64,000 nucleotides of DNA from Hemiscyllium ocellatum (taxonomy: Eukaryota): positions 26,535,231 to 26,599,230 of the forward strand of contig NC_083435.1 of NCBI RefSeq assembly GCF_020745735.1, read 5' to 3'. Every line of letters starts with the position of its first letter. Within the stretch, counting starts at the first letter, position 1. The position numbers and the translations under genes were made by a program. Of this stretch, positions 1 through 43,500 are shown in pieces. The notes beneath the pieces are model-generated. The model had not been told where the DNA came from and ran no database searches. It saw only the letters and a list, made by a program, of their open reading frames with translations.

Positions 1-1689
1 GAGGGTGGACACTGAGCTCATACTCTCTCTCTCCCTGTGTGATCACTAAAGACCAGCTCATGCAGTTTGACACTAAGCTTTCAGAATGTCCTTCTGCAGT
101 TGGCCGACATTGTTTTGGACTCAGCCTCAAGATATCGTCAAGTAGAGGGATTTGGACTATAGAAACATCCGGAAACCTTTCATCCTGAATGGGGCCTCCT
201 GTCAGCTGATTGACTCCTTTTAAAGGAGTCAATATTCCTAGAGTTCTCGCTGTAGTTTGTTTCTGGAGTTGACTTTTGCTCTCCTGGGATTCTGAATTAC
301 TGCGGTGTGGTGGGTGGTGTCTAGGTCTGATGGAGGCCTCCAAGCAGGTCAAGAGACCAGACCATGTGGAGATAGAAGAGAAATATCTTGACTGGCTGGA
401 GTGTCTCGGACTTGAACGTCAGGTAGTTAAAGTCAGATCTATTGAGGGTGAAACTAGGAAACACTTCCACACATAGAGAGTGGGAAATGGTTAGAACTCT
501 CTCTTTCTCAGAAGGTAATTGATGCAAAATGAACTACTGTGAATTAAAATCTATAAAACTCAGAATTAAGAGACAAATGGAAGATATATAAATGGATTGA
601 GGCAACACACCAGCAAAGATCTGATTGAACAGTGGAATGGCCTCCTCATCTTCCATGTCCCTGTGGGTTTTGCTGGTCTTTAAGGAGTGAGTCTGAGGGG
701 TTTTACTGATGTTTGGGGAATGGGTCTTTTGTGTTTCACTGCTGGTGTTTATGGGAGATGCTATAAAATGTGCTGGGTTTTCTGTGCTTTGTAACAGTTT
801 TTTTTTCTCTTCCCCAGGTTCCTCTAATGTCCTTGCTGGAAACCAGGTTTCCATTGCCGGAATTGATCTTCTAATTTGTTCATCCTCAATTTCAGGAGTG
901 ATTTGAATTGTCAGTCTGGCTTAGTGAAATGTCTACATTTTGTTAATAATAGATTATTGAAATCTATTGGCAGATGTTGAAATGTGAATTCAGTCAAATT
1001 TAAAATGAAGAGACAGCTTAATTGTGATAATGTAATCTTTATTGATTGTAGTTAAAAGCCATCTGGTTCACTAATGCCCTGCCAGGATAGAAATTATTAC
1101 AGTCTGGTCTACATGTCACTATGCAACGAGTTAACTCTTAACTGCCCTCTGGACATCAAGCGCGGGCATTGCCGGTGATGGCCAAATCTCAGGAAATAAC
1201 TTTTAATGGTTGACAGTGTGGTTATTTTTCCTGAGCAGAAACTTCATCTCCACAGCACAACACCCATTGGTCATGCCCCATGCACAATACTGCCAGTCAG
1301 TTCAGCACATAAACATGATCTTCATCAGCCATTCATCACTGGGATCATTCCAGATCTCAATTTGAATTTTCCTGCACCTTAAATACTGAGTGAAACCTTT
1401 TTCTATGTGCTTATTAGACAGGAAGATCTCTGGATACTGATGGAAGACAACACTACCTTACTGTAATGTCATGAATAGATGTCATGAATCCACCTCTTGC
1501 CCAGGCCATGCTGCAGTCTCACACTTTCTGACTTGAACTGTTTCCATGTTCACACTCCTATCAATTTGTAACCTTCCTCATGCAAAGCCTCAATAGAGCT
1601 GCGTACTCATGGCCTGCATTCCAGCTTCCTGTCTTGGGTTCAAGGCTGCACTATTTTCTGTCCCACTCTCTCCAACTCTAAGATTTTGC

Positions 1690-1985
1690 TGAGGTGTTTA
1701 TTGAGTCATCGAGTCATACAGAACAGAAACGACCCAAACAATCTATGTTCCCAAACTAAACTAATCCCACCTGGCTATGCCAGGTCCATATCACTACAAA
1801 CATTTATTATTTGTGTATTCATCCAAATATAAATGGTGTAACTGTACCATGTCCACCACTTCCTCTGGACATTCATTCCAAACACAAACCATTCTCAGTG
1901 TAAAAATGTTGCCTCTCATGTTGGTTTAAATTCTTTCTCCTCTCACCTTAAAAATATGGTCCCCAGTCTTGAAATTCATCCCCCA
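1690..1985 (-). mobile_element. CR1-like LINE 3'-end remnant repeated in each unit
   Basis: gagtcatacagaacagaaacgaccc...accacttcctctggacattcattcc...gttgcctctca is recognisable as the reverse complement of a CR1 3' end. The assignment is from recall. Confidence 0.5.
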
Positions 1986-1989
1986 TCCA

Positions 1990-2620
1990 CACGTGGACAC
2001 ATACACACACTCACGCAGACCCTCTCTCATACACGTGCTGTCCCTCATACACACACAGTCCCCCCATTCTCACATCCACACATGTGCCCTCTCACAGGAT
2101 TATACTCTGTCACACTCACACACACACTGCCAAGCACACGCACATGTAAGCGCAAACTCACGTGCACTCACTCACATACATGTGTATGCACATACACACA
2201 CACACGACTATCAGGTGTATTGCATTTGCAGAATTGTTTTTGCAGACATATTGTTGAGTTTTGGAGCAAAATATAATTTGCAGGCAGTCGATCCATATCA
2301 CCTTAAGTTATCTCGAGAATGTGACTTCAAAGAAATTCTGGCATTTTCATATTAATGAACCAAAACCTACAACCCATGCTGAAAGATGAAAGACTCAACA
2401 GCAATCTTGGTTTGTTCAATATATTGTTTCAGTTGTATGATGCTGTGATCTTTTGCTATAAATTCTGTATCTTGTCTCACAGCTACCTGATGAAAGAGCA
2501 GCACCCCGAAAGGTAGTGCTTCCAAATAAATGTGCTGGTCCATAACCTGGTGTTGTATGATTTTTAACTTTGTCCACCCCAGTCCTATGCCAACACTCCA
2601 CATAATCTGCAATAAGAAAG
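1990..2620 (+). mobile_element. Probable Penelope-like element remnant (CA-rich tract plus hammerhead-like terminal repeat), one per unit
   Basis: An imperfect CA/CT-rich tract, then gcatttgcagaattg..., then CTGATGA...CGAAA followed by aataaatgtgctggtccataacctggtgttgtatgatttttaactttgt. The family assignment is from recall and unverified. Confidence 0.4.
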
Positions 2621-4639
2621 AGTCTAACCATCAGCCTTTGACCATAAATAGCTTTACCATCACTGAATCCCACTGTCAACCTCTGAGGGGTTACTATTCA
2701 TCTGAACCTGACCTGGACTGAACATATAATACAGTGGCTACAAGAACAAGTTAGAGGCAAAGAATACTGCAACATGCAACTCACCTCTGACTCACCAAAG
2801 CCAGTTCACCATCAAGAATGCACAATTCAGGAGTGTGATGTAATACTCCTGACTTACCTATATGTGTGCAATTCCAGTAACACTGATCAAGTTTGACACC
2901 ATCGAAGACAATGTATTGGCACCACATTCATAACTAATTAGCTCCTCCACAAGTGACACTCCGGAGCAGCAGTCCATACTGTTTACAAGATGAACTGTGA
3001 ACCTTCAACGCAACACTTAGACAATGCCCTCCATATCAATGTCCATGACCTCCCAGAAGGATAAGGGCTGCAGATACATGGGAAAACCATCATTTACATG
3101 ACATCCTCCAAACTACTCACCATCCTAGCTTGAAAATATAACTCTACTCATCAGTGTCACTGGGTCAAAACCCTGGAATTCTCCATGAGTGTGGCCAGAG
3201 CCCACATTGGTCCGATCCCTTGAAGATTCTGGCCACAGAAACTGACAGACAAGTGCCCTACTCACATCAATCCAATGACCCGATGAGATGTATGATGGCG
3301 GCCCTGAGACCGTACTGGGAGATTACCAGAGGTTACTGTTCATGGACCAAACCTACAAAATCAATGTGTGATTTCCCTCTCCATCAGCGGATAGCGAAGT
3401 GACAATTACACCAGCTCCCCACACCATTGTGCAGAAGTTGCTGTCTGAGAGAATGGATGGAATTGTGCAGAAAATCCCCCACACTTCTGTTTCCAGGTGA
3501 AGACCAACCATCCAGCGTTCATGGTAACACCAACTGTTGCATTGACTTACAGAACATTCAGCAAAAGTGCCAGCCTGGCAATGTCTGTACAGGTCCATAT
3601 CACGACAAACATTTATTATTTGTGTACTCATCCAAATATAAATGGTGTAAATATACCATGTCCACCACTTCCTCTGGAAATTCATTCCAAACACAAACCA
3701 TTCTCAGTGTAAAAATGTTGCCTCTCATGTAGGTTTAAATTCTTTCTCCTCTCACCTTAAAAATATGGTCCCCGGTCTTGAAATTCATCCTCCCTCTGTA
3801 CTGGTCTCCCATCTGAATACACTGGACAGAGAACACTCTTGCCTGACATTCCTAAAGGGCCTCCCTTTCCAATGGGTAACAGAAGCACTGTCAAAGTTGC
3901 AGATACTGTGCACAGTTCATGAGCCATCTGGTGGGCTCAATGAACAAAGGCCACAGGTGGATACAGTAAGGGACTATGGAGCAGCAAAGACTGTAACTTT
4001 GTAAACAGTAACAAAGACAGTAACAATAACTGACTCGCCTCCACCTCACTCACATTCCCAGATTTCCACAGAAAGGTGTGGGATATCAGGTCATTGCACT
4101 CTAGATCATCCAGAATGTCCAGTAGGAATTCAGGCAGTACCATCGTTGAGACTGACCGCTGCTTTCCGTCTCTACACAATGATGATGGGTTTCCACCTTC
4201 ACTGTATATTTTCTTTGCACCACTTTGAGGTAATGTTTGCAGCATTCAAAGCTGGATGTGAAAGCTAGACGTTGGCAAAGTACATACATCTCAGAGTGAG
4301 AGTCGTTGCCATAAAAGGTGAACACCCCAACAGTGAGAGAAATCACAGAAACAGAGGAAGTAGGAGTAGAAGAAGGTCATTCATCCTTTTAACTTTGCTC
4401 CACCATTCAAAATGATCATGGCTGATCGTCCAACTCAGGACCCTATTTCCATTTATTCCCCATTAACTTTGATTCATTTCATCCTAAGAGCTGAACCTAA
4501 CCCTTTCCTCCAAATATTCAGTGTGACAGAGGCTCATCACTCCCTGGATGAAGACATTTCTCCACAACTCAGTCCAAAATGGCCTCCTGCACATCCTTAG
4601 ACTGTGATCCATGGTCTGGACTCCTTGGTCATTGGGATG

Positions 4640-5290
4640 TACCCTACATTTATCCTATCTTGTCCTGGGTTTCTATGAGATCTCACTCCTCAATCTTCTA
4701 ACCCCTACTGCATAGCGTCCTAACCCCTACTGCATAGCGTCTAACCGATCCAGTCTCTCTCATACGTCAGTCCTGATATCCCTGGAATTGATCTGGTAAA
4801 TGTTTGTTGCTCTCCCTCCATCAGCAGAATATCCTTCCTCTGATAACGTGACCAAAACTGGGTACAATATTGGCAGTGTGGTATCACCAAATGTCTGTAC
4901 AATTGCAGCAAGACATCGTTGCTCCTGCACTCAAACATTCTCACTATGAAGCTCAACACATCATTTGTGTTCTATATCACCTGCCTCACCTGCATGTTTA
5001 CTTTCAGTGATGGCTGTACAGCATTTGTTGCACCTTCCTTTTTCCCAATTTATTGACATTCAAATAAGGATCTGCCTTCCTGTTTTCACTATTAAAGTAC
5101 ATAAGCTGAACTTCAACCACATTATCTTGCATCTGCCATGCATTTGCCCACTCATTCAACTTGTCCAAAATACACTGATACATCTCTGCATCCTGCTCAC
5201 AGCTCAGCCTCCCTCCCAGCTTTGTGTCATCTGCAAATTTGGAGATATTATATGAAGTTTGTTCATCTAAATCATTAATGTAGTGAATCG
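4640..5290 (-). mobile_element. Decayed CR1-type LINE RT fragment (paralogous copies about 16760-17440, 36980-37640, 51530-52200, and from about 63720)
   Basis: Minus-strand translations include YINDLDEQTSYNISKFADDTKLGG, LDKLNEWANAWQM and LQLYRHLVIPHCQYCTQFWS, which are CR1 ORF2 C-terminal motifs, with frameshifts. Boundaries are approximate. Confidence 0.8.
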
Positions 5291-7194
5291 CTGGGCTCCA
5301 AGCACTGATCACTGTGAAACCCCACACATCATTAACTGCCACAAGGCAAATGAACATATATTCTTGCTTTCCATCTACCAATGGGTTCTTGAAACAAACC
5401 CGCATCAAGACACACAGAACTTATTTAAAAATTAGTTTATAGCAGTGACAATTTTACACTGTCAGAAGTAAGCCAGAGGGAAACGCCAATAATCCATTGG
5501 AAATGAGAATATAGTTCTTCATAACGGTTTATGTTAAAGTATACGGGTCAGACCAATTAGCATCATTCACAACTTTTCCTCATTCTTCATTCTTGAAAAG
5601 TGACAAAGGACAATTTAGGAACCCAACTCAGCAACATCTGAAGGAGGAAGACAGGAACTTAGCCATTGCTGTACAGTATGTGCTGCAGTGAAATATGTGA
5701 AACCACAGTAAAGGTGGACAAACTTATTCAAGCTGTAAGTTCACTCAGTGAAGCCAATTAAAGAGAATAGGAGTCTTTATTAAAATCAGCCTAAATTATT
5801 CAGAATGCCATGAATAGTGTGAATAATCTTTGAAAAACTATGAAGAGGACAGGATTAGTTTTAAAACCACAGACAGCTGGTTCCATTCAGTAGAGTCAGT
5901 ATCGAGGGCACAAATTGTTTATTAGGCTACACTCAGCCAGATTCCTCTATTTCTAACAACAAAGTTGGGAATGCTCCATTTTGGCTGCAAAAGCACCGAA
6001 AAATCCTTCAATAACCAATACAGAAGACACATTGCTGTATTGTAATACAATCCTGACTTGCGCGGAAAATATTTCGCTCTTAAAGTTTTCGTTTGGAGGT
6101 AATGGATTATGCTTCACCCAATCCGATGATGTAATGAGGTCTTAGATGAGATGATCTTGTGTCAGCACAGTCAACAAAGCCGACTAAAACACAACTGAAA
6201 CGGAGAAATGAGGCAGTAAACCCAGATTCAGGTGACCAAGAATTCACCGACCTCTCCAAACACCGCCAGCAGCAACAAGGTTCCATCATACAACACCTTG
6301 TTGATGGTGAACAGGCCTTGAGGAGCCAGAGTTGAACTACTTACTGCTGAACCCCCACTCTCTCACCAACTGATAAAACCAGTGTTAATACTGCTGGTCA
6401 CATTCAGGTTCTGGTCAGTGGAATACAACTTAATATTGATGTTGGGAGATTCAATGATGGTAAAGCCTTTGAATGTCAAAGTATTGAGGTGAATGAAAGA
6501 TGTTGAGATTCGGTCTTGCTGAAGATGGTCATTTGGCAGATTCAGGAAGCCCATTTCCACACGGAATACTTTGTTTTATTCAACGAATGTGGACATCATT
6601 GACTAGGCAGCAATTTATTGTCCAGTCCTATTTCTCCAGAGGATAATTGCTGTGGGATCTGGAGTCACTTGTAGGCCCAGACCAGATAAAGACAGGAGAT
6701 TTCCTTGCACAAAAGGACATGAATGAACTCGATGGTTTTACAGCTATCCTCATTGAGTACATGTCCACCACGAGGCTAGGTTTCAGTTCCAAGTTGTTTC
6801 TTTATTGAATTCAAACCTCACTGTCTGCCATGAGGGGATGTGAACCCATGTCCCCAGATGATTAGGTGAGGGGATTCCCAGCCCAGTGACATCACCGCAA
6901 TCTCACCATCTTCCCTCACATCAAGGATCCATCTAAACATATCTTCTCTAAAGGTATGTGAATGTTGGGATAATTTCAAAAGTATCATCAGAGATGATTG
7001 CATTTTTTGGAGACTGAGGTTTGTCTGATATTTTGGCGATTGAAGGAGGTGAAACTGGAGTTAAAAATCAACAATGATCTCATTGGGTGGTGTAGCAGCA
7101 TCGAGGGGCTGAACGGTGTCTGTCCCAAAAATGAATTGCAGCTCAGCTCATTCTCCCAGCAACTGGAGATGACAGTGGAAGTGTTTCTGTGATT

Positions 7195-7310
7195 GGGAAA
7201 TCCCAATCCTGGGCGGAGTTATGCAACCTGTTTGTTGTCTATTCTGCCGGAGTCTGGTGACTCACTGAGTCTTTTTATTGTGATTGGATGGAAGATAGTT
7301 TGGGACCAAT
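7195..7310 (+). promoter_or_regulatory. MHC class I proximal promoter of gene A: NF-kB site, GC box, S-X-Y module, CCAAT
   Basis: GGGAAATCCC 7195-7204; GGGCGG; S-like CAACCT 7224-7229; X2-like TGACTCA 7258-7264; Y box ATTGG 7283-7287; CCAAT 7306-7310. Lies about 190-300 bp upstream of the leader ATG. Confidence 0.75.
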
Positions 7311-7495
7311 CAGTGTGAAGGAGTCTCGGTGAAGAGGGGCAGTAACAGGAACTGAAGCAAAGTGCTGAAAAATATGTCAGGAGAGATAGTGAAGACTCTT
7401 CAGAACAGTTTAATATCATTCTCGATGACAGCTCACAGACTGAGACAGTCCGCTGGAAAATAATTTATCCTCCCAGACTGTCAACTGAAGTCACG

Positions 7496-10400
7496 ATGAT
7501 TGGACTGATAGTGCTGGGGCTTCTATGGGGAGAACTCTCTGCAGGTTAGTAATGGGGGTGTGAGAGAGGGGTAGAGCCAGGCTGGGAACTGGGGCTATAA
7601 CCTTTGTTCATGTTCCCGTCAGAATGATTTATAGGGTAATATTTATCTAATTTCAGGTTTTAAACGTCAGTGAATCCATTGTTCTAAATGATTTAGGTTC
7701 ATACGAGATTTAACCATAAGGCCAAAAGATCTGTATTTGCGAAATTCAAAAGATCTGTTGAACATTACAGGGTGAAAAGTAAAAATATTACAGGGTGAAA
7801 AGTAAAAATATGAAATTGGTAGACTTTTTTTCAAGTGAAAGGAAAAGAGAAAAAAGTTAACAGCATCATGTGATGAAGCTGAAGTGAATGGTATAATTCT
7901 CTCCAGTGCTGGAGAAACGGTGAACAAAATGATTCATGATTCAGGAATTCATGCCCTGATTTTTATGTGTTTCAGAAACTCACTCTCTCCGGTATTTTAT
8001 CACTGGTATGACTCCGATTCCCAATTTCCCAGAGTTTGTGATTGTTGGTTATGTGGACGGGGTCCAGTTTGTTATGTATGACAGCAATCGCAAGGATTTA
8101 ATCCCCCGGGAACAGTGGATGGTGGACAGCGAAGGACCCAAGGCCTGGAAGCGGAAACGGTTTCTTGCTCAGGAGCGAGAAGACTGTGCCAAACGGGATA
8201 TTCTCACATTTATGTCTCGGACCAACCAGACAGGGGGTGAGTGCTCACTGTCCCACAGCATGACATCTTCCTGTGCATTTGAGGAGTCTGGGTGGGAATG
8301 GGAGAAATTAGGAGTGAATCTGAGTTCCAGAGACTGACCGACTGGCTGTGGGAATGGTTGGAGGGGACACCAACTGTCTCTGATCAGCAACTTGTGTTTC
8401 TGATTGACAGGGATCCATATTTACCAGATGATGACTGGCTGTGCCCTGAGGGATGATGGGACTGTGAGTGGGTTCAACCTCCGAGGATGGGACGGGCAAG
8501 ATTTGATCAGCTTCGATAAGGTCCACAGGGTGTGGGTGACCCCAATCCGCTGGGCAGAAAGCATCAAAAACAGCATCGAGTGGCTGAGAAAATACCTGGA
8601 GTACGGACAGAGGGAACTGAGAGTCGGTGAGTGAGTGAGAGTTGTTGTGGTGGATGGTGTCTGGACCTTTCTTTCTTTATGTTCCTGCACTGACCCCTCT
8701 TCCTCTCTCCCTCAGTTGCCCCCATTGTGTCCTTTATCCGTCTGGGTGATTCTAACTGGCTGTCCTGTCTCGTCACTGGGTTTTACCCACGAGCCATCGA
8801 GGTGACTCTGTGGAGGGACGGAGCGTTGATTGATGAGTCCCTGTCCACAGGGATCTTACCTAATCATGACAGGACCTACCAGATCCGGAAATGGATAGAA
8901 TTTGATCCGGAGGATCAGGCCGAGTATTCCTGTCAGGTGGAGCGCAGTGGATTGGAGGAGAAACTGGTGGTGATTTATGGTAAGGCTGATTCTCTTTGTT
9001 AGAGAGGAATCGGACTCCGACCAGGATTACAAGACAGAGGACATAGAGAGGGACGTTCATATGAACGTCAGTGTGTCACAGTGCTCACATCAGTTGTAGA
9101 GGACAACAATTCAGGCAGTGAATCAGGGACAGTTTGCCAGTGTATCCTGGTGTGTAATGCTGCCCAGCATCTTAATATCCAGGATCAGTAAGGATTAAAG
9201 TATTAGTATATCATCTGATATGCGTGTGACAGAACCAGCTATGTCCATTCAGTTCACCATATTTCCTGAGCACTCTTCAAGTCCATGGACACTTTAATCT
9301 CAAACGACAAGGGCAGTGGATTCTTGGGAACACCAGCTCCTGCAAGTTCCCCTCCAAGCTACTCAGCATCCTGACTTGGAAATACATTGTGGGTCCATCT
9401 ACAGCACATAAGCTGCATTGGTCTAAGAAGGTAGCTCACCACCGCCTTCTGTCGAGCAATTCGGGAATGACTGTAAAGACTGGCCCGGGCATTGACACCC
9501 ATATCCCTGTGAATTAAAAAAGAGAAACAGATCCTGAGATGTTTTATTATGAGACAGTCCAATGAATCCAGGGATAATAATGTCCAATAGGATCCATGTA
9601 TCCTGATATTTAAGCATGGCAGCATCCAGTGTATCCTGGAATTGTAGCCCAGTCTATTTATCATTGTTTCTTGATGATCTTTGTCCAACAATGAATAGTC
9701 AGCATGAATTTTGAGGGAGAATATTGTGTTTGACCAACTCCGTTGAATATTTTTCATGAAGTAACAGAGGGTACACAGTGGTAATGTTGCACATGTACTG
9801 CTGCAAAGTTTTCAAAAGGCCTTAGATCAGATACTCCCATAATAGAAATGTTTAGAGAATGTGGGGTCAGTGGGAACGTAATAAAATGGATTGTTAGCTG
9901 CTTTGCAGCCAGGAAACAGATTGGCGGAAAAGGGTTAGTTAGTCAGAGTGTCAGAATGTGGGAAGTGGTGTTCTGCAAGGAAACACTTCCCTTCACATTT
10001 ACAATATTGATTTGGACTTTGAAATTATGGAATCACAGAATTGCTCTAAAGAAGGCTCTTCAGCCCATCATGCCCTGACTGTCTCTCTGAGCATTACCAC
10101 TCAGTGCTATTCTCCTGCCTTCTCCCCATCACCCTGAATATGGTTTTATTTAAATGTAAATTTAGAATTTAAATTATTATATACAGCAGCACTAAGCAGT
10201 CTAGAGACCAAGACAGGAATCCCAGGTAGTCCCAGGGAGGAGAGAAACATTTCAATATATTCTAACAAAGAGCAGAGATGAGCTTTGGACACTCCTGTGT
10301 GATAGGAGATAGGAGATGCAAAATCCCAACGTGAGGTGTCTTATGCACAGGACAGCCTGGTTGTGTCTACGACATTACATTAGTCATTGATTCTGGTGAT

Positions 10401-22900: not shown

Positions 22901-25900
22901 CGACATCACATTAGTCATTGATTCTGGTGATCAAAAACAATTGTCTCCAAAGAAAAACATCCTCGCTTGTCCAACTACTCCTCATAATTCAGTCCCTTGT
23001 ATCATGGAAACGTCCTTCTGCATTCTTTCAAGTTTAATAACATCTTTTCTATTTAGTAAGGTGACCAAAACACAATATTCCAAGTGCTGCCTCACCAATG
23101 TCCTGTGCAACTGCAACATTATTTCCCAACTATACTCAATGCCCTGACTGATGAAAACTGGTGTGCTAAAAGATGCCTTCACTGTTCTGTCTACCTGTGA
23201 CTCAATTTTCAGAGAACTGTGGTCTCTCTGTTCCACAATAGTCCTTAAGCCCCTACCATTCACTTTGAAACCCCAACCTTGATTTGACTTTCCAAATCAC
23301 AAGACCTTACATCTATCTGCATTAAACTCCACTTGCCACTTCCCTAGCTGATCAAGGTCCTGCTGCAATTTTTGATAACCTTCCTAACTGTCCACGATAC
23401 CACCCATTTTAGTGTCATCTGCAAACTTACTAATCATACCTTGTATGTTCTCATCCAAATCATTGATACCAATAACAAACAGCAATGGGCCCAGCACTGA
23501 CCCCTGAGGCACACCATTAGTCTCAGGCCTCCAATCCGACAAACATCCTTCCATTATTACCCTTTGCTTCCTGCCATCAAGCCAGTTGTGTCTCCAATTT
23601 GCCAGCTTCCCCTGAATTCCATGTGATCTAACCTTCCAGGGCAGCCCACCGTGTGGAACCTTTTTAAAGGCCTAACTGAAATCCATTTAGATTATGTTCC
23701 TGGTCACTTCAACAAAGAATTCTAATAAATTTGTGAGGTATGATCTCCTACGCACAAAGCCATGCAGAATATTCCTAATCGAACCCTGTCTTTCCAAATA
23801 TGTGTATTTTATCTCTCCGAACCCTCTCAACTAACTTACCTACCACAGATATTAGGCTTACTAGTCCATAGTACCCAGGATTTTATTGCAGCCCGACACA
23901 ATATTCGCTACCCTCCACCTACCAGGACCTCACCCGAGGCTAACGGTTAGAAAGGAAATTTCTTTACAAAAAACCCGAGGATAGACTTTAATCTTGAGAG
24001 GGAGATTTAGCCTATCCTACCTCACCTTCAATTCTATCTTGAAGTTTGGTTAGACCACATGTCGAGAACTGCAGACAGTTCTAGTTGCCATGTGATGTAA
24101 AGGATATTGAGGCACTGGAGAGGGTGCTGAGAAGATTTACAATGTCAATATCAGAAATGTGTGAGTGTACGCATCAGGAAAGGATTGAGAGGCTTGATGT
24201 CTTCTCTCTTGAAAAATGGAGCCCAAACAGAGATCTTTACAAGGATGAATCATTTTGAAAGAGTGGGTGCAGAGGCAGTGTTTGGGGAAGAGCACAACTA
24301 AGGACCATCAACACAAGACAGTCACCAAATATTCCACAAGGAATTCCAGAGAAATATCTGCAGTCGGAGCATTAGGAGAATATGAAGCTCGCTGCTGCAG
24401 GGTGTGAGTTTGTCAGGATGTATTTAAGGGGAGTTTAGAAAGGAATAGGGAGTGATGGTAACAGATGTAGATGAGGAAGGGTGAGATGAGCAGCTTCACA
24501 TGACTAAATACAAGTGTATGCTGTTTGGATCAAATTGACTCACTGTATGCCGTGTATTCTGTATAACGCTGAATTTTTTTAAAAAACATTTTTTGTCTCT
24601 TTCTCTCTCTTCCTGCTTCACTTGGTTCTCTATCTATCTCTCACCTCTCTTTCTCTCTATCTCTGTCTGTTTGTCTCTCTCCCCCATTTTATTTCTCTCT
24701 CTGTCTCTGTCTCTCTGTCTGTCTGTCTATCTGTCTCTCTCTCTCTCTCTCTCTGGCAGTCCCAAAGTCTCACTCCCAGGTTCTTGTTACTGTCGGGATT
24801 GTATTTGGACTCCTCGGGATCATCTCTCTCGCTGTTGTAGCTGTCGTCGTTCACAAGAAGAAAGGTAGGAGTTTGTAAGAAAATGGTGGCTCCTCACTGG
24901 CAGTTCAGGGAATTAGAGAGTCTGGAAGCATATGGCCAGACGGTAGTGAAGGAAAAAGGAATATTGTGAGCTGTTTTGGGCCCCACATCTAAGGAAGGAT
25001 GTGCTGGTGTTGGAGGGAGCCCAGAGGAGATTTACAAGAATTATCTCAGGGTTGAAGAACTTGTCATATGAGCAGCTGTTGAGGACTGTGTGTGTACTGG
25101 ACGGAGTTTAAAATATCGAGGGGAAATCTCATTGAAAATTACACATTACTGAGAGGCCTGGCCAGAGTGGATGTGGAGAAGATGTAGGAGACACAAGGAC
25201 CCAAGGGAACAGCCTCAGTGTGATCTGAGGAGGAATTTCCTCAGCCAGATGGTGGTGACTCTGTGGAACTCTCTGTTTCCATACTGTACATCTCGATGAC
25301 TCTATAAGACCATGGAGGCCAAGACATTGAGTGTCTTTAAGACAGAGATATATAGATTTTTGATTGGTAAAGGGCTCAAGGGTTACGGTGAGAAGGCAGG
25401 AGAATGAGGTTGAGAAATATATCAACCACGATCGAATGGTGGAGCACACCCGATGAGATGAATGGCCTAATTCTGCTCCTATATCTTGTAGTCTCCAGTT
25501 CATTGTTTGGGTTCAGAAAGTTTGTGAGGAAGCTCTGTGTTTGGGAGTCAGTCTCAGGGTTAGTGATGGCTCAGGCATTCGGGAGAGGCCCTCCATTTGT
25601 GAAGGACGGTCAGAGATATGGTGCCCTGTTCCTCACGTTAGGCTGGAATGTCTGAGGGGTGAATGTCTCACATTGTGAGTGTCAGGTCAGACAGTTCAGA
25701 CTCGGGCTGGCTCTGAGTTCACTGTTGGGCATCAGCAGCTCAGGGCAATGTGGGTCGGAGAGGCTGACTCTGGATGGGAGTGAGGGTCTTCAGCATTTCC
25801 TCTGATTTCCTGACAGTATGTCAAACTGACTGAACATTCCTTGTTTTACAGGGGGAATGAAGAGCGGCTACAATCTCACAAACAGTAAGTTGATAACTCA

Positions 25901-28073: not shown

Positions 28074-28937
28074 ATGAGTAAAGGGAAGGGAACAGGCGGC
28101 TCTAAGAAAGCAGGGACCCCTCCCCCACCCTCTCCCTCTTCAGCTGCAACAAAGGTGTCTTCAGCTACTTCAGGAGATTTACCAATGAAGATGAGCTTTG
28201 AGGAGATGTTTGCCAGGTGGGAGGCGAAGATTGATGCTTTTATCGATGAGTCTCGGCAGAGCAGAGAAGCACTATCAGCCGAGCTGCAGAAGCAGGGCAG
28301 AGACATTCAGGAATTGGAGTGCCGAGTCAGAGAGGTGGAGTCGAAGGCCGCAGCCTCAGAGACTGCGATAAAATCGGCAGCCGACCACATCCGTTTTCTC
28401 GAGAATCGAGTCCAGAACCTAGAAAACCACATTGATGACCTCGAAAATCGATGTCGTAGAAAAAATATTCGGTTGTTGGGCCTGCCTGAGCAGGAAGAGG
28501 GAGGTCAGCTGACAGCATTCTTAGAGCATTGGCTGCCACAACTTTTAAATCTGCATAATGGATCAGGCCAGGTAAGGGTAGAATGGGCCTACCGGGTCGC
28601 AGTACGTGGACCCGGTTCAACCCAGCGCCCACGCCCGGTCCTGTTCCAGCTGCAGAGCTATAGGGAGAGGCAGATGCTCCTGGAAGCCTCAAGAAATCTG
28701 GGAAAAGATCCCCAAGCTATGACCCACAAAGGATCCAGGATCATGCTGTTCCAGGACTTCTCCCCAGCTTTGGTCCGAAAGAGGAAGGCATTCGATGAGG
28801 CGAAGAAGCGTTTAAGGGACTTAAATATTCAGTACTCCTTACGATATCCAGCGACACTACGCCTTAGCCACGAAGGATCCATATATAACTTTGGATCACC
28901 GGAGAAGGCTAAGGAATTCTTGGACTCTCTTAAATAA
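28074..28937 (+). CDS. L1 ORF1 protein (coiled coil plus RRM/CTD-like RNA-binding protein), 287 aa
   Basis: Coiled-coil region followed by DDLENRCRRKNIRLLGLPE, ...RPRPV..., and FQDFSPALVRKRKAF...YSLRYPATL motifs typical of vertebrate L1 ORF1; intact frame inside the element. Confidence 0.9.
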   Translation: MSKGKGTGGSKKAGTPPPPSPSSAATKVSSATSGDLPMKMSFEEMFARWEAKIDAFIDESRQSREALSAELQKQGRDIQELECRVREVESKAAASETAIKSAADHIRFLENRVQNLENHIDDLENRCRRKNIRLLGLPEQEEGGQLTAFLEHWLPQLLNLHNGSGQVRVEWAYRVAVRGPGSTQRPRPVLFQLQSYRERQMLLEASRNLGKDPQAMTHKGSRIMLFQDFSPALVRKRKAFDEAKKRLRDLNIQYSLRYPATLRLSHEGSIYNFGSPEKAKEFLDSLK

Positions 28938-29557
28938 ACTGTAAGAGATTGTGGACGCTGGTCTGCCTTTCCCATTATTTTGGTTTACATCCCTTCATCT
29001 TTTCTTATCTTTCCCCTTATGTGTGTATGTATATATATATATATATGTTGGGGCGTTTGGTTAATGTTGATGGGGAGAGGTGCTTACCTTATTCTATTTT
29101 ACTTCTGTTTTTAGGAGCGGGGTTGTTTTTCTTTCCCCTGTTATTTTGTGGTATTATATTTAAGTATTACATGTTGAGATTGTAATCTTATAGTTATATA
29201 TGGTATTAATATTCCGAAATATATTTAGATGTGGGTGTGGGTGGGGTGTTCACTGTTAACTCTAGCTTTATATTATATTTGAATTCTCCTCATTTTATTG
29301 AGGAACACCTGGGTCAAGGGTGGGGCACTGGTTGGAAGAGGGTAAGATGGACTGTGGGAGAGGAAGTGACACTCCCTGGGAACAAGGGAGAAAATCTCCA
29401 ATTCGGAATGTTTTATATCTTTTATACTTAGAAAGAGTTTTTTGTTATATTGTTTTGAGTGTATCAGAGAGTCTTTACTTTTGTAAATCTTGTATGCTCC
29501 ATGCTCGGGATGTTCTAGATAGGGTTTCCCCTCTCGAGGGGTCTCGGATCTGTCCAG

Positions 29558-32500
29558 ATGATTATGGCTGAACAGTCGGTTAAGTGGTGCATCTGGAATG
29601 TCAGGGAGAGTAATTCGCCAGTTAAAAGGAAGAAAATATTATCAAATCTTAAGAAGGAGAGAGTTGATATAGCTCTCCTACAGGAGACACACCTGTCAGA
29701 TAAAGAACACTTAAAATTACGACAGGGCGGATTTGATCAGGCCTTTTTTTCCTCTTTTAATTCAAAAAGCAGGGGAGTCGTTATCCTTGTCCGGAAGAAC
29801 TTCCCTTTGAAAATTCTAAATCAGATAAAAGACGAATCTGGACGATATATTTTGATTAAAGCCCTCATAAATGGAGAGGAATATGGGATCTTAAATGTGT
29901 ACTGCCCCCCGGCACACCCCTTTAAATTCATAACGGAAGCTTTTTCAAAACTGATGGCCTTTGGTGCCCGTCATACAATTATAGGGGGAGACTTTAATTG
30001 TATTATGGATCCGGAAATAGACAGGATTCCCAAGAGTGCCGCTGGAGTATCTCCCAGATCTAGACAACTGGCGGACCTGAATAAAGAATTAGGATTGGTA
30101 GATGTATGGAGATGTCTCCATCCACAGGGTAGAGATTTTTCTTTCTACTCTAATCCACATAAATGTCACACAAGAATTGATATGTTTTTTGCCCCATCGA
30201 TTTTTCTAAATTCTATAGCAACCTGTAAAATAGGTACTATAGCAATCTCTGACCATGCCGCTGTATACATGGAAACTAAGGTAAAGAACAATGGGACATC
30301 CGCTCGGCATTGGCGTATGGACCCCTTCCTGATAAAAGATAGCAAATTTTTAAAGTACTTCTCCCAAGAACTTAAAACTTTTTTAGAAATTAATACTGGT
30401 ACGGCTAGCAATCCGTCAATGATGTGGGAGACCATCAAAGCTTATGCACGAGGTTTGATCATCTCCTATTCAGCGACCCAGAGGAAAATGAAGGGAGAGC
30501 AACAGCGTCTGCTCGAAGCTCGCCTAAAAGCAGCCGAAACAGCATACGCTGATAGACCTTCTATCACAAAATTGCAGAGGATTACAGCTCTTAGGACAGC
30601 TTTAAACACCGCGCTTACTCAAACGGCTAAAAGGGAAATATTATTTGCGAAACAAAGATTATATGAATATGGCGACAAACCGGGTAGATACTTAGCATTT
30701 CTTGCAAAGAAAAAGAAAGCCCCTCAAACTATTCCGACCATCAAGGAAAGTACAGGTACCCTGACTCATGATCATAAAAAGATCAATGTGACCTTTAAAG
30801 AATTTTATTCTGAACTATATAGATCGCAGGATTGTGAAGATAGGATTAGGAGGATGCAGTCATTTTTTAAAAATTTGACCTTCCCGGGCCTGACTCCGGA
30901 ACAGGTGTCGGCCCTAAATACCCCTTTAACAGTCCAAGAAATACTTGAGGCAATTAGGCAACTTCAGAGCGGAAAAGCACCGGGCCCGAATGGTTTTCAA
31001 GCTGAATTCTATAAAGAATTTACAGGAATATTGGTTGACCCACTTATGGATATGTATAATTTTGGCATAGTCAGGTCTGTCTCCCGCCCACGCTGAAAGA
31101 AGCAAATATTTCTCTTATCCTCAAAAAAGGAAAAGACCCAGAAGATTGTGCATCTTACAGACCAATATCCTTACTAAATGTAGACTTTAAAATTCTCTCA
31201 AAAATGTTAGCACTAAGACTAGAAAGGGTACTGCCATATATTATAAAGGAGGACCAGACGGGATTTATTAAGGGCCGCAGATCATCCAATAATATTAGAA
31301 GGGTCCAAGCCTGTCATCAGGGAAAGATACCAGGAGTAGTAATTTCATTGGATGCGGAAAAGGCATTTGATAGGGTTGAATGGTCATATTTATTTTACAC
31401 ATTGGAAAGGTTTGGCATTGGACAGGTGTTTACCAAATGGGTTTCAACATTGTATAATGACCCCAAAGCAGCTGTTATTACTAATGGGTTAAGATCGGAT
31501 GGCTTCAATGTGGGTAGAGGCTGCCGTCAAGGATGTCCTCTCTCACCATTGTTGTTTACACTGATAATCGAACCATTAGCAGAAGCCATCCGGACTGATC
31601 CTAATATAACGGCCCCGAGGATTGGTACAGGTAAACACAAAATTACCCTCTATGCAGATGACGTTCTCTTATTCCTCAGTAATCCTTTAATGTCAGTGCC
31701 TCGTCTAATTCAAGTTATTAATACATTTAGTGCATTCTCAGGCTATAAAATTAATTTTTCAAAATCGGAAGCCATGCCAATGGGTGGTCTGGCTATGATA
31801 CCCCACTTAATGGACGGATCCCCTTTTCCCTTCCGTTGGTCCCTGGAGGGCTTCTTATATTTAGGTATTTTTATCACGCCAGTATTTGATCAGCTGTATA
31901 GGGCTAATTTTGTACAATTAATGGAAAGAATAAGGCAGGGCCTCCAGCGATGGAGAGACCTTCCGACTTCCTGGCTAGGGAGAATAGCATTAATTAAAAT
32001 GAATGTTCTGCCCCGTCTCTTATATCCTATGAGAATGCTCCCGCTGATGCTGCCAAGGCTAGCCCTACGTAAATTATATGGCTGGTTGGGCTCCTTTATT
32101 TGGAACCATAGACGGCCCCTTATTAAGCTGAAGAAGCTACAGCTTCCACAGGCAAGGGGAGGACTGGACTTCCCAGACTTTAGGAAATATCAGTTAAGCT
32201 CCCTACTAAGTTACATAGCTGATTGGGTTTCATCTGATCCACAATCAATTTGGCTGGATATCGAAGCCTCCCAAGTAAAATACCCACTTATTAACCTTTT
32301 ATTTTCAGATAAGAGGAAAATCATTACAGACCACTGTAAAAATCCCATAATATTAAACACAATTAAGGCCTGGAATATAATGCGGCAAAATGAGGGTAAC
32401 TCACATAAAACATCCCCCCATGCACCAATAGTAGGCGCATGGGGATTCCAACCGGGGATTACAGATGCCACCTTTAAACTCTGGAGATCCAGGGGCATCT

Positions 32501-33357
32501 CATGCTTAGGGGACCTATTTAAAGATGGGATCCTGATGTCCTTTGAGCAGCTGCGTCTGAAATTCGGAATACCTAATGGGGATCTCTTTCGATACTTCCA
32601 AGTTCGAGATTATATACAGAGGAAGACTACATTAACAGATAGTCTTTATAAATCAGACAGGGAACGTAATGTCTTACGACCAGCGGGGGCATCCTCCGTT
32701 AGTACTATATACCATTTGCTACATGAAGGAGTCTCAGGAGACATGGATGACCTGCTTAAAACATTGTAGCAGGACTTGGGGCTAGAAATCTCTGAGGATA
32801 TGTGGAATGACATTTGGGAAAATGCTAGAAGAATTGCTATCTGTAACAGAACTCAGGCTATCCAACTAAAGATACTTCATAGGGCCCATATAGCACCGGC
32901 TCGACTGGCAAAATTTAAGGCAGGAGCATCTCCAATGTGTCCCAAATGCAAAATAGAGGTGGGTACTCTTGCACATTGTCTGTGGACTTGTCAGAAAATC
33001 CGCAGATACTGGACTAAAGTGGCAAATACCCTGACAGAAATTTTAGGAACGGAAATTAGGGTGGACCCTGTATCTCTCCTTTTGGGCTTTTCGAACCTCT
33101 CATCTCTGGATATGCATGGGAAGAGACTATTTTCTATTCTCTCTTTCTGTGCAAGGAAAAATATTTTGGTGAACTGGGTGGCTGAGGGCCCCCCTGGACT
33201 TTCAAATTGGCACAGATTAATTATGGAATATATCCCCCTTGACTTCCTCACAAATATGGTGCATCGAAAGACTGAATTATTTTATAAAATATGGCAGCCC
33301 TTTTTGAATTATATAAATGCAGATATTTCGGCTATCCTAACAAGGGCTTTTATTTAG
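29558..33357 (+). pseudogene. L1 ORF2 (AP endonuclease, reverse transcriptase, CCHC), interrupted
   Basis: Endonuclease motifs WNVR, LQETH, GGDFN, SDH; RT motifs SLDAEKAFDRVEW, RQGCPLSPLLF, YADD; C-terminal CPKC..HCLWTC. Split by a 1-nt frameshift near 31055-31075 (YRPISLLNVDFKILSK lies in the next frame) and an in-frame TAG at 32767-32769. Confidence 0.92.
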
Positions 33358-40511: not shown

Positions 40512-43500
40512 ATGATTGGACTGATCGTGCTGGGGCTTCTATGGGGAGAGCTCTCTGCAGGTTAGTAATAGGGGTGTGAGAGGGCGGGGCAGAGCCAGGC
40601 TGGGAACTGGGACAATAACCTTTGATCATGTTACCGTCAGAATGGTTTATAGGGTTATATTTATGTTTCATGTTTCATGTTTAAATGTCAGTGAATCCAC
40701 TGTTTTAAATGATTTAGGTTCGTACGAGATTTAACCATAGGCCAAAAGATCTGTATTTGCGAAATTCAAAAGATCTGTTGAACATTACAGGGTGAAAAGT
40801 AAAAATGTAAAATTGGTAGACTTTTTTTCAAGAGTAAAAGGAAAAGAGAAAAAAGTTAACATCACGTGATGAAGCTGAAGTGAATTGTATAATTCTCTCC
40901 AGTGCTGGAGAAAAGGTGAACAAAATGATTCATGATTCAGGAATTCATGCCCTGATTTTTGTGTTTCAGAAACTCACTCTCTTCGGTATTTTATCACTGG
41001 TATGACTCCGATTCCCAAATTCCCAGAGTTTGTGATTGTTGGTTATGTGGACGGAGTCCAGTTTGTTATGTATGACAGCAATAGCAAGGATTTAATCCCC
41101 CGGGAACAGTGGATGGTGGACAGCGAGGGACCTGAGGCCTGGAAGCGGAAACGGTTTCTTGCTCAGGAGCAAGAAGACTGTGCCAAACGCGATATTCTGA
41201 CATTTATGTCACGGACCAACCAGACAGGGGGTGAGTGCTCACTGTCCCACAGCATAACATCTTCCTGTGCATTTGGGGAGTCTGGGTGGGAATGGGAGAA
41301 ATTAGGAGTGAATCTGAGTTCCAGAGATTGACCGACTGACTGTGGGAATGGTTGGAGGGGACACCAACTGTCTCTGTCTCTGATCAGCAACTTGTGTTTC
41401 TGATTGACAGGGATTCACATTTACCAGATGATGACTGGCTGTGACCTGAGGGATGATGGGACTGTAATTGGGTTCAACCTCCGTGGATGGAACGGGCAAG
41501 ATTTGATCAGCTTCGATAAGGACCACAAGGTGTGGGTAACCCCAGTCCCCTGGGTGGAAAGCATCAAAAACAGTTGGGACCAGGATGTGGTGAGTAAGCA
41601 GAGGTGGAGGCATTACCTGGAGGTGGAGTGCATCGAGTGGCTGAGGAAATACCTGGAGTACGGTCAGAGGGAGCTGAGAGTCGGTGAGTGGACAGGGAGT
41701 GAGAGTTGTTAAATTTCATGGTGCCTGTGTGTTTCTTTCTCTATGTTCCTGCACTGACTCCTCTTCCTCTCTCCTCCAGTTCCCCCTGATGTGTCCTTTG
41801 CCCGTCTGGGTGATTCTAACTGGCTGTCCTGTCTCGTCACTGGGTTTTACCCACAAGCCATTGAGGTGACTCTGTGGAGGGACGGAGTGTTGATCGATGA
41901 GACCCTCTCCACTGGGATCTTGCCCAATCACAACAGGACCTACCAGATCCGGAAATGGATAGAGTTTGATCTGGAGGATCAGGCTGAATATTCCTGTCAG
42001 GTGGAGCACAGCGGACTGGAGGAGAAGCTGGTGGTGATTTATGGTAAGACTGATTCTCACTGTGAGAGAGGAACCGGACTCAGACCAGGATCACAAGAGA
42101 GAGGACCAGCTGAGCTGCTTCAGCAGGACGCTCCAGGGTAGAGAGAGGGACGTTCATATGAACTGTCAGTGTGTCACAGTGCTCACATCAGTTGTAGAGG
42201 ACAGTAATTAAGGCAGTGAATCAGGGACACTACAGCAGGATGTCACCCAGTGTATTCTGGTGTGTAATGCTGCCCAGCATCTTAATATCCAGGATCGTTA
42301 AGGATTAAAGTATTAGTATATCATCTGATATGTGTGTGACAGAACCAGCTATGTCCTTTCAGTTGACCATATTTCCTGAGCACTCTTCAAGTCCATGGAC
42401 ACTTTAATCTCAAAGGACAAGGGCAGTAGATACTTGGGAACACCAGCTCCAGCAAGTTCCCCTCCAAGTTACTCAGCATCCTGACTTGGAAATACATTGT
42501 GGGTCCACCTACGGCACATAAGCTGTATTGGCCTAAGAAGGCAGCTCACCACCGCCTTCTGTAGAGCAACTAGGGAATGACTGTAAAGACTGGCCCAGGC
42601 ATTGACACCCATATCTCTGTGAATTAAAAAAGAGAAACAGATCCTGAGATGTTTTATTATGAGACAGTCCAGTGAATCCAGGGATAATAATGTCCAATAG
42701 GATCCATGTATCCTGATATTTCAGCATGGCAGCATCCAGTGTATCCTGGAATTGTAGCCCAGTCTATTTAACATTGTTTCTTGATGATCTTTGTCCAACT
42801 CAGTGTAACAATGAATAGTCAGCATGATTAGTCATTGGATTCTGGTGATCAAAACAATTGTCTCCAAAGAAAAACATCCTAGCTTGTCCAACTACTCCTC
42901 ATAATTCAGTCCCTTGTATCATGGAAACGTCCTTCTGCACTGTTTCCAGTTTAATAACATCCTTTCTATTAGCAAGGTGACCAAAACACAATACTCCAAG
43001 TGCAGCCTCACCAACGTCCTGTGCAACTGCAACATAATTTCCCAACTATACTCAATGCCCTAACTGATAAGACTGGTGTGCTAAAAGCTGCCTTCACTGT
43101 TCTGGCTACCTGTGACTCCATTTTCAGAGAACTGTGCACCAGAACTCCAAGGTCTCTCTGTTCCACAATAGTCCTTAAGGCCCTACCATTCACCTTGAAA
43201 CCCCTACCTTGATTTGACTTTCCAAATCGCAAGACCTCACACCTATCTGCATTAAACTCCACTTGCCACTTCCCCAGCTGATCAAGGTCCTGCTGCAATT
43301 TTTGATAACCTTCCTCACTGTCCACGATACCACCTGTTTCAGTGTCATCTGCAAACTTACTAATGTTACCTTGTATGTTCTCATCCAAATCGTTGATATT
43401 GATAACAAACAGCAATGGGCCCAGCACTGACCCCTGAGGCACACCATTAGTCTCAGGCCTCCAGTCCGACAAACATCCTTCCGTTATTACCCTCTACTTC

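Follow-up and report, generated by a model that had tools for sequence, protein, structure and literature searches.

A 57-nt in-frame deletion in the alpha2 helix of two near-identical, probably non-functional UBA-type class I genes of Hemiscyllium ocellatum

INTRODUCTION

What becomes of a class I gene that has lost part of one wall of its groove and still has an open reading frame? The question is raised by a 64,000-nt stretch of the Hemiscyllium ocellatum genome (GCA_020745735.1; referred to here as the window), which is a gapless tandem array, free of N, made up of units of ~12 to 15 kb with one class I gene per unit. In two of its four genes, A and A', 57 nt are missing from exon 3, and the reading frame continues across the gap. 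A truncated groove wall is not unheard of, given the precedent of mouse T10/T22, class Ib products of the H2-T region, which carry a 12-residue deletion in alpha2 and a 3-residue deletion in alpha1, fold with beta2m without peptide (PMC2196254), act as gamma-delta T-cell receptor ligands (PMC2196254, PMC7608190), and have been said to have a "truncated MHC-like fold" (Wingren et al., 2000, as cited in PMC7608190). We asked whether A and A' encode a functional variant of the class I fold or are genes on the way to becoming pseudogenes.

RESULTS

The array contains two nearly identical units, A (positions 1-14617) and A' (46905-61532), which are 99.15% identical. Situated between them are copies B and C, which have 90 to 94% identity to A, and, alongside these, a broken LINE (28074-33357). 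The translations of A and A' match exactly a 277-amino-acid RefSeq protein (XP_060706346.1 and XP_060707072.1) that is encoded twice on the 49.3-Mb contig of the assembly; B corresponds to XP_060706345.1 and C to XP_060707070.1, and P0194 is the same as A/A' across all 263 residues of exons 1 to 4. RefSeq treats A and A' as ordinary protein-coding genes, without a low-quality flag.

We set the exon coordinates from the sequence and its AG/GT sites. In copy A, all of whose exons lie on the forward strand, exon 1 (7496-7544) encodes the signal peptide MIGLIVLGLLWGELSA and ends in a phase 1 donor, exon 2 (7976-8236) encodes an intact alpha1 domain of 87 codons with an unpaired cysteine in its helix, exon 3 (8411-8626) encodes the alpha2 domain in 216 nt instead of 273 nt, with an open frame and AG/GT flanks, and exon 4 (8716-8979) encodes an intact alpha3 C1-set immunoglobulin domain. 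The last exon (12077-12120), which reads A-SDERTYSDSSAIS-stop, is joined directly to exon 4 in the RefSeq model. Exons 1 to 4 lie at 54390-54438, 54870-55130, 55305-55520, and 55610-55873 (forward strand) in A', at 19952-20000, 20402-20662, 20837-21109, and 21199-21462 in B, and at 40512-40560, 40970-41230, 41411-41683, and 41780-42043 in C. They are open in all four copies, with canonical splice sites. No stop codon, frameshift, or destroyed splice site was found in the coding exons of A or A', and AG/GT is present at every junction.

The initial annotation of this DNA had described an in-frame loss of 57 nt at 8573/8574 and 55467/55468, and sequence, alignment, and blastn coordinates agreed with it: exon 3 of A and exon 3 of A' lack 57 nt that are present in B and C. 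Copy A reads ...AAAAACAG followed directly by CATCGAGTGG..., with the junction at 8573/8574, and A', whose exon 3 is 100% identical to that of A, has the same junction at 55467/55468. The missing segment is found in B at 21000-21056 (forward strand), where it encodes RWDQDVVDNQRWKHYLEVEC, and its equivalent in C, which encodes SWDQDVVSKQRWRHYLEVEC, at 41574-41630 (forward strand). The 65 more distant class I sequences in our alignment also all possess the segment; as it is ancestral, the difference is a deletion in A and not an insertion in B and C. In translation, SIKN-RWDQDVVDNQRWKHYLEVEC-IEWLRKY in B stands against SIKN-S-IEWLRKY in A, so that 20 residues are replaced by a single Ser, made up of the AG of codon 146 and the C of the Cys codon, for a net loss of 19 residues without a frameshift.

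The two breakpoints have one G in common, which makes the junction movable by 1 nt; microhomology extends no further. Repeat-mediated deletion was rejected on this ground, a nearby GCATC repeat being off the junction. A cryptic intron was rejected as well: the 57 nt are not bounded by GT...AG in B or C, and the difference is thus genomic and not one of splicing. The chance probability of an in-frame length is 1/3, so the frame alone is no evidence of selection.

A hand mapping to HLA numbering, which agrees with the Pfam profile coordinates, placed the lost residues at HLA positions 146 to 164, including W147, Y159, and C164, the three residues that had been named as lost at the outset. The Pfam MHC_I profile (PF00129; cutoff, 28.3 bits) matched alpha1 with 63 bits over profile positions 2 to 88; the alpha2 domain of A was matched with 37.7 bits over positions 91 to 145 only, compared with 91 to 179 for alpha2 of B. 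When A was aligned with the nurse shark structure 6LUP, chain residues 2 to 144 were paired and the alignment resumed at 162, skipping 145 to 161, and Ser158 of A stood opposite Cys162 of 6LUP, the equivalent of C164. This cysteine is present in 65/65 of the other aligned class I sequences. The alpha3 C1-set domain (PF07654) scored 56 bits, and the cysteine pair of its disulfide is kept in the A translation.

At 277 residues, the predicted product still has its signal peptide, the alpha1 domain, the beta-sheet of alpha2, the alpha3 domain, and a tail of 14 residues. It lacks the conserved C101-C164 disulfide that ties the alpha2 helix to the sheet, C164 being deleted, and, with 19 residues gone, it lacks a full-length alpha2 helix as the second wall of the groove. 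The Pfam matches, the 65-sequence alignment, and the 6LUP mapping all bear out the claim that neither a canonical two-walled groove nor a C101-C164 disulfide is possible, and, judged from its translation, the A/A' product could not form a canonical closed groove. The initial annotation also predicted a free C101. Its partner is indeed deleted, but C101 is not the sole free thiol in A, as precursor residue C87 in the alpha1 helix is also unpaired.

For a view of the whole domain, AlphaFold monomers without beta2m were compared for A and the intact paralog P0166, both on the same 69-sequence alignment. In P0166, alpha2 had a pLDDT of 92 to 96 and 41 helical residues (segments 150-161 and 163-191). 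In A, the pLDDT of alpha2 was 65 to 87 over the whole domain, strands included, and that of alpha1 and alpha3 stayed at ~90. In the A model, alpha1, alpha3, and the sheet of alpha2 still adopt the class I fold, and two short helix remnants (150-156 and 161-172, with 19 helical residues left) bridge the platform. The deletion is therefore within the alpha2 helix, as had been claimed, but about half of the helix is lost in these models (19 of 41 helical residues are kept), and not most of it. An open, half-walled platform and a misfolded protein had been put forward as the alternatives for the product, and these are the right ones; confidence in alpha2 falls and that in alpha1 and alpha3 remains high, but monomer models leave folding undecided and do not choose between the two. 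When the A model was run against the PDB with Foldseek, 6LUP ranked highest, the next hits were ordinary chains of class I and MR1, and T22 was not prominent. The TM-score of ~0.49 is explained by the free orientation of alpha3 in the monomer model. We rejected the ranking as a discriminator between readings.

A and A' differ from B and C in a second respect, the absence of the transmembrane (TM) exon and exon 6. Both exons are found in B (TM exon, 24759-24866; exon 6, ~25857) and in C (TM exon, 44833-44940; exon 6, ~45940). In the RefSeq model of A, the splice from exon 4 to the last exon yields ...VVIY-A-SDERTYSDSSAIS. All class I exons here are phase 1-1, so that dropping the TM exon and exon 6 cannot disturb the frame. 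The initial annotation had found two independent frame-preserving deletions in one gene notable; with one of them in frame by necessity and the 57-nt event in frame with a chance of 1/3, this argument falls away.

A third A-type gene without the anchor, XP_060707073.1, lies elsewhere on the contig. Its downstream layout is that of A, with a 342-amino-acid class I gene 8 kb downstream in both cases, and it has the A-specific replacements S236 and R271. It still encodes ...EVEC and is therefore without the 57-nt deletion. Its model begins nine codons upstream, inside exon 3, in a frame other than that of its paralogs, which, as far as the protein tells, implies that a separate lesion has broken the frame in the part of exon 3 where A carries its deletion. 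It is likely that anchor loss came first and that the 57-nt deletion occurred later, only in the A/A' line.

Over 14.6 kb, A and A' are separated by 70 mismatches and 11 indels, and 0.48% of sites differ. Between 8104 and 11215, they are identical. A tract of this length (3.1 kb) has a chance of ~1e-9 at the mean difference rate of the unit, and its perfect identity points to recent gene conversion or crossover. The tract is mostly non-coding; within it lie exon 3 with its deletion, exon 4, and 2.2 kb of intron. The deletion may have been copied between A and A' by gene conversion. One silent change, at 8103, is the only difference between A and A' that is certainly later than the deletion. 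We also considered the similarity of the two coding sequences as a sign of constraint (across 790 coding bases, 3.8 differences were expected and 1, a synonymous one, was seen; P = 0.11) and rejected it. Because the identity spans 3.1 kb of mostly non-coding sequence, the lack of exon differences between A and A' is regional and not selective.

The initial annotation had proposed dN/dS on the A branch as a check. We counted as A-branch changes those unique to A at which B and C agree. There were 8 replacement and 18 silent changes (omega, ~0.13; P = 4e-7 against the neutral ratio), and 17 of the 26 fell at third codon positions (P = 8e-4). The corresponding counts were 20 replacement and 15 silent changes for B and 14 of each for C. 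In non-coding sequence, the A-unique rate was 2.4%, and in the upstream 2 kb unique changes amounted to 2.1% for A, 3.9% for B, and 1.9% for C. The ratio on the A branch is well below 1, which implies that the lineage was constrained for most of its history, but the counts cannot place this constraint after the deletion. The evidence on function is mixed: the A branch bears past purifying selection that is not dated to after the deletion; were the deletion an old one, the deleted form would itself have been under that constraint. Near-invariant positions are hit by three of the eight replacements specific to A (D/E102 to A, which adjoins C101; D/E129 to V; and H263 to R). In copy C, which is anchored and has a full helix, 3 of 12 replacements likewise fall at conserved positions, which makes this a weak signal.

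To which class I lineage does the array belong? Maximum-likelihood analysis grouped A, B, and C in one clade with two more copies from H. ocellatum (SH-aLRT, 88), and this Hemiscyllium-only clade was nested in a group with a support of 99, with Chiloscyllium plagiosum P0169 as its sister. A wider clade of 23 rows (SH-aLRT, 100) contained A, B, and C together with O19480_HETFR (horn shark) and O19479_GINCI (nurse shark), and the classical UAA sequences (6LUP, O19481, and Triakis) fell in the other clade of the tree. O19479_GINCI and O19480_HETFR, to both of which A is 70 to 71% identical, we take to be the founding UBA sequences of Bartl et al. from 1997. From its place in the tree, the array is assigned to the UBA non-classical lineage. 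The two 1997 sequences are UBA as cited in PMC12562908, and UBA is an expanded multicopy lineage derived from UAA (PMC12562908, PMC10751288). A, B, and C are likewise a multicopy tandem array with non-classical substitutions at peptide-terminus-binding residues. UBA clusters are further marked by lying apart from the class Ia region, with c4 and rxrb as flanking genes, and such flanks fall outside this window.

Among the other UBA members that we retrieved, the alpha2 helix is full, Cys164 is present, and a TM region is usual, whereas A and A' are without all three. The nurse shark UAA molecule 6LUP, which matches A best in both structure and sequence (50% identity), keeps the classical anchor residues Y59, T143, and K146, all of which are replaced across the A/B/C group. 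In the intact copies B and C, Ala replaces Y59, Ile replaces T143, and Arg or Ser replaces K146; they are themselves non-classical already, and the loss of W147 and Y159 was therefore no conversion of a peptide presenter into something else.

A survey of related species had been suggested from the start, and the deletion was seen in none of the annotated proteins of the other sharks retrieved, including P0169 from the sister genus Chiloscyllium. The place of A in the tree, inside a Hemiscyllium-only clade within the group that has P0169 as sister, makes the event a young one. A collection of 5.8 billion proteins, queried with A in full length and with its exon 3 separately, returned only the RefSeq entry and one unrelated 109-amino-acid protein. 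No Logan fragment with the deletion junction was found in that collection, a result that is uninformative rather than negative. As a separate observation, P0064, P0070, and P0065 are predicted class I proteins of other vertebrates, all unverified models, that are without 11 to 19 residues of the alpha2 helix.

DISCUSSION

Starting from the deletion and its mapping, the exon losses, the intact reading frames, and the lineage, we infer an order of events and, above all, a loss of function. On balance, we favor the view that A and A' are young, probably non-functional duplicates in a UBA array. A common A-type ancestor would have lost the TM exon and exon 6 through a genomic deletion of roughly 2 kb, after which exon 4 would splice solely to the last exon and give an anchorless product. 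The 57-nt deletion in exon 3, with its 1 nt of microhomology, would then have arisen by end-joining or replication slippage and removed residues 146 to 164, including Cys164. The deleted exon, now common to A and A' within the 3.1-kb identical tract, would have been either inherited by both or copied by gene conversion. With one groove wall reduced to about half and two cysteines left unpaired, the product would be expected to fold poorly, to be retained or degraded, and to present no ligand. The genes would then be pseudogenes at an early stage, too young for their reading frames to have been broken. They resemble the truncated genes and pseudogenes of class I families that evolve by birth and death in being recent tandem duplicates with exon loss, an internal deletion, and a broken sister copy, and they differ from them in being still without a stop codon, frameshift, or splice-site lesion. 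To read A and A' as a notable, possibly purposeful variant is not supported, because an intact frame is nothing remarkable, this non-classical family has a rapid turnover, the anchor was lost before, the sister gene is broken, and the changes counted give no sign of constraint after the deletion.

The deletion could, however, have been kept by selection along with the loss of the anchor, in which case A and A' would encode a functional, secreted, peptide-free class I-like protein, an open, half-walled platform serving as a T10/T22-like receptor ligand or a soluble decoy. We regard this as unlikely, though it deserves to be taken seriously. Neither copy has a damaged reading frame or splice site, RefSeq carries protein-coding models, the A branch bears the mark of purifying selection, and the gene has been duplicated and its deleted exon homogenized between A and A'. 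Moreover, the AlphaFold model retains the class I fold, with 26 residues left, by our own arithmetic, to span ~40 angstroms, and T10/T22 fold peptide-free despite a 12-residue alpha2 deletion (PMC2196254, PMC7608190). As in A, their deletion is in frame and within the alpha2 helix and the groove is not closed, peptide binding being excluded in T10/T22. The two are unrelated by descent, and the 12-residue loss in T10/T22 is reported to affect the F-pocket end, whereas A has lost 19, including Cys164, and has no anchor. T22, by contrast, we take to be membrane-bound and to have kept its C101-C164 disulfide. Against a functional platform stand the loss in A of a disulfide that is invariant in 65/65 relatives, which leaves two free thiols, unlike in T22 as we understand it, and the fall in model confidence across the whole alpha2 domain, beyond the gap itself. 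Selection cannot be assigned to the period after the deletion, the sister A-type copy XP_060707073.1 is broken, an ortholog with the deletion was not found in the other shark proteomes searched, and a transcript-derived fragment bearing the junction was not found in the protein collection. A literature search on viral class I homologs without the disulfide gave nothing usable. The more specific proposal that A and A' are a convergent shark counterpart of T10/T22, secreted, with an exposed sheet floor, stable without the alpha2 disulfide, and acting as a soluble ligand or decoy for lymphocyte or NK-type receptors, strikes us as a long shot.

It is also conceivable, if rather doubtful, that A and A' are transcribed and spliced into a product without a function of its own, a tolerated by-product of a rapid birth-and-death family that would at most consume beta2m or chaperones. 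The RefSeq model, the upkeep of the promoter-proximal region and splice sites as well as in B and C (2.1% compared with 3.9% and 1.9%), and the multicopy, expanded nature of the UBA family (PMC10751288, PMC12562908) are consistent with this, but it differs from the young-duplicate reading only in that RNA or protein is made, a distinction that sequence alone cannot draw. Very improbable, finally, is an artefact of assembly in the deletion or in the A/A' duplication. A difference of 0.48% is within the allelic range, and a false tandem duplication of haplotypes is conceivable, but the two stretches that carry the deletion were assembled separately, have flanks of their own, and differ by 70 mismatches and 11 indels. 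N gaps are absent from the window, and A and A' are separated by B, the LINE, and C. Were A and A' haplotypes of one locus, both would still carry the deletion.

If A and A' are decaying, as we favor, they capture an unexceptional moment in the birth-and-death turnover of an expanded non-classical class I family, and the RefSeq models XP_060706346.1 and XP_060707072.1 should be treated with caution, as they are probably not working antigen-presenting molecules. If the protein should instead prove to be made and stable, it would be the first non-mammalian class I molecule with a truncated groove wall and among very few class I molecules without the alpha2 disulfide, and it would bear on how early non-peptide-presenting receptor ligands evolved from class I. 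Should the likeness to T10/T22 reflect true convergence, the oldest jawed vertebrates would have evolved truncated-groove class I ligands on their own.

Probable sequence exchange within the array

Alignment of the two anchor-less copies, A and A', revealed a tract of 3.1 kb with zero base differences (approximately 8104 to 11215 in A and 54998 to 58110 in A'), whereas the copies diverge by ~0.5% over the rest of the 14.6-kb unit and by 1 to 2% at its 3' end. This disparity points to a recent gene conversion or crossover between the two copies. The 3' edge of the unit that A and A' share at 99% identity coincides exactly with an (AC)32 microsatellite (61501 to 61564), which may mark the duplication or conversion boundary.

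We also found that the introns of A, B, and C (for example, 8237 to 8410, 20663 to 20836, and 41231 to 41410, respectively) are more similar to one another than are the silent sites in the flanking exons; copy-unique differences in intron 2 amount to 0.6 to 1.7%, compared with exon dS values of 0.14 to 0.24. On these sequence comparisons, the similarity looks like the product either of intron homogenization or of older exon lineages, as has been reported for other MHC genes.

A non-LTR retrotransposon (28074 to 33357) occupies the spacer that separates B from C. It includes an ORF1-like frame with a coiled coil, as well as ORFs for an APE-type endonuclease (29558 to 31096) and a reverse transcriptase (31204 to 32769). 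Because its reading frames are split, the element is probably dead.

Coding changes in individual copies and related genes

A, A', and C encode an unpaired cysteine in the alpha1 helix (EDCAKRD) at precursor residue 87 (codon at approximately 8175 to 8177 in A and 41169 to 41171 in C), where B has isoleucine. In A, this residue would be a second free thiol alongside C101. Copy C is anchored and in other respects intact. Its exons 3 and 4 (41411 to 42043) carry three replacements, D131N, D246N, and P259L, at positions where >90% of class I sequences are conserved, and this copy may likewise be under relaxed constraint.

Among the proteins retrieved in the class I comparison, three predicted class I proteins of other vertebrates, P0064 (teleost-like), P0070 (sauropsid-like), and P0065, likewise have 11 to 19 alpha2-helix residues missing, and P0065 also lacks C164. 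These may be gene-model errors or additional natural truncations.

A third anchor-less A-type gene, XP_060707073.1 (P0269 in the same comparison), lies on the same contig beyond the window; it keeps the C164 codon and appears to be frame-broken in exon 3. Since a class I gene of 342 amino acids lies 8 kb downstream of it, the array seems to be built from repeated pairs of an A-type gene followed by a B-type gene.
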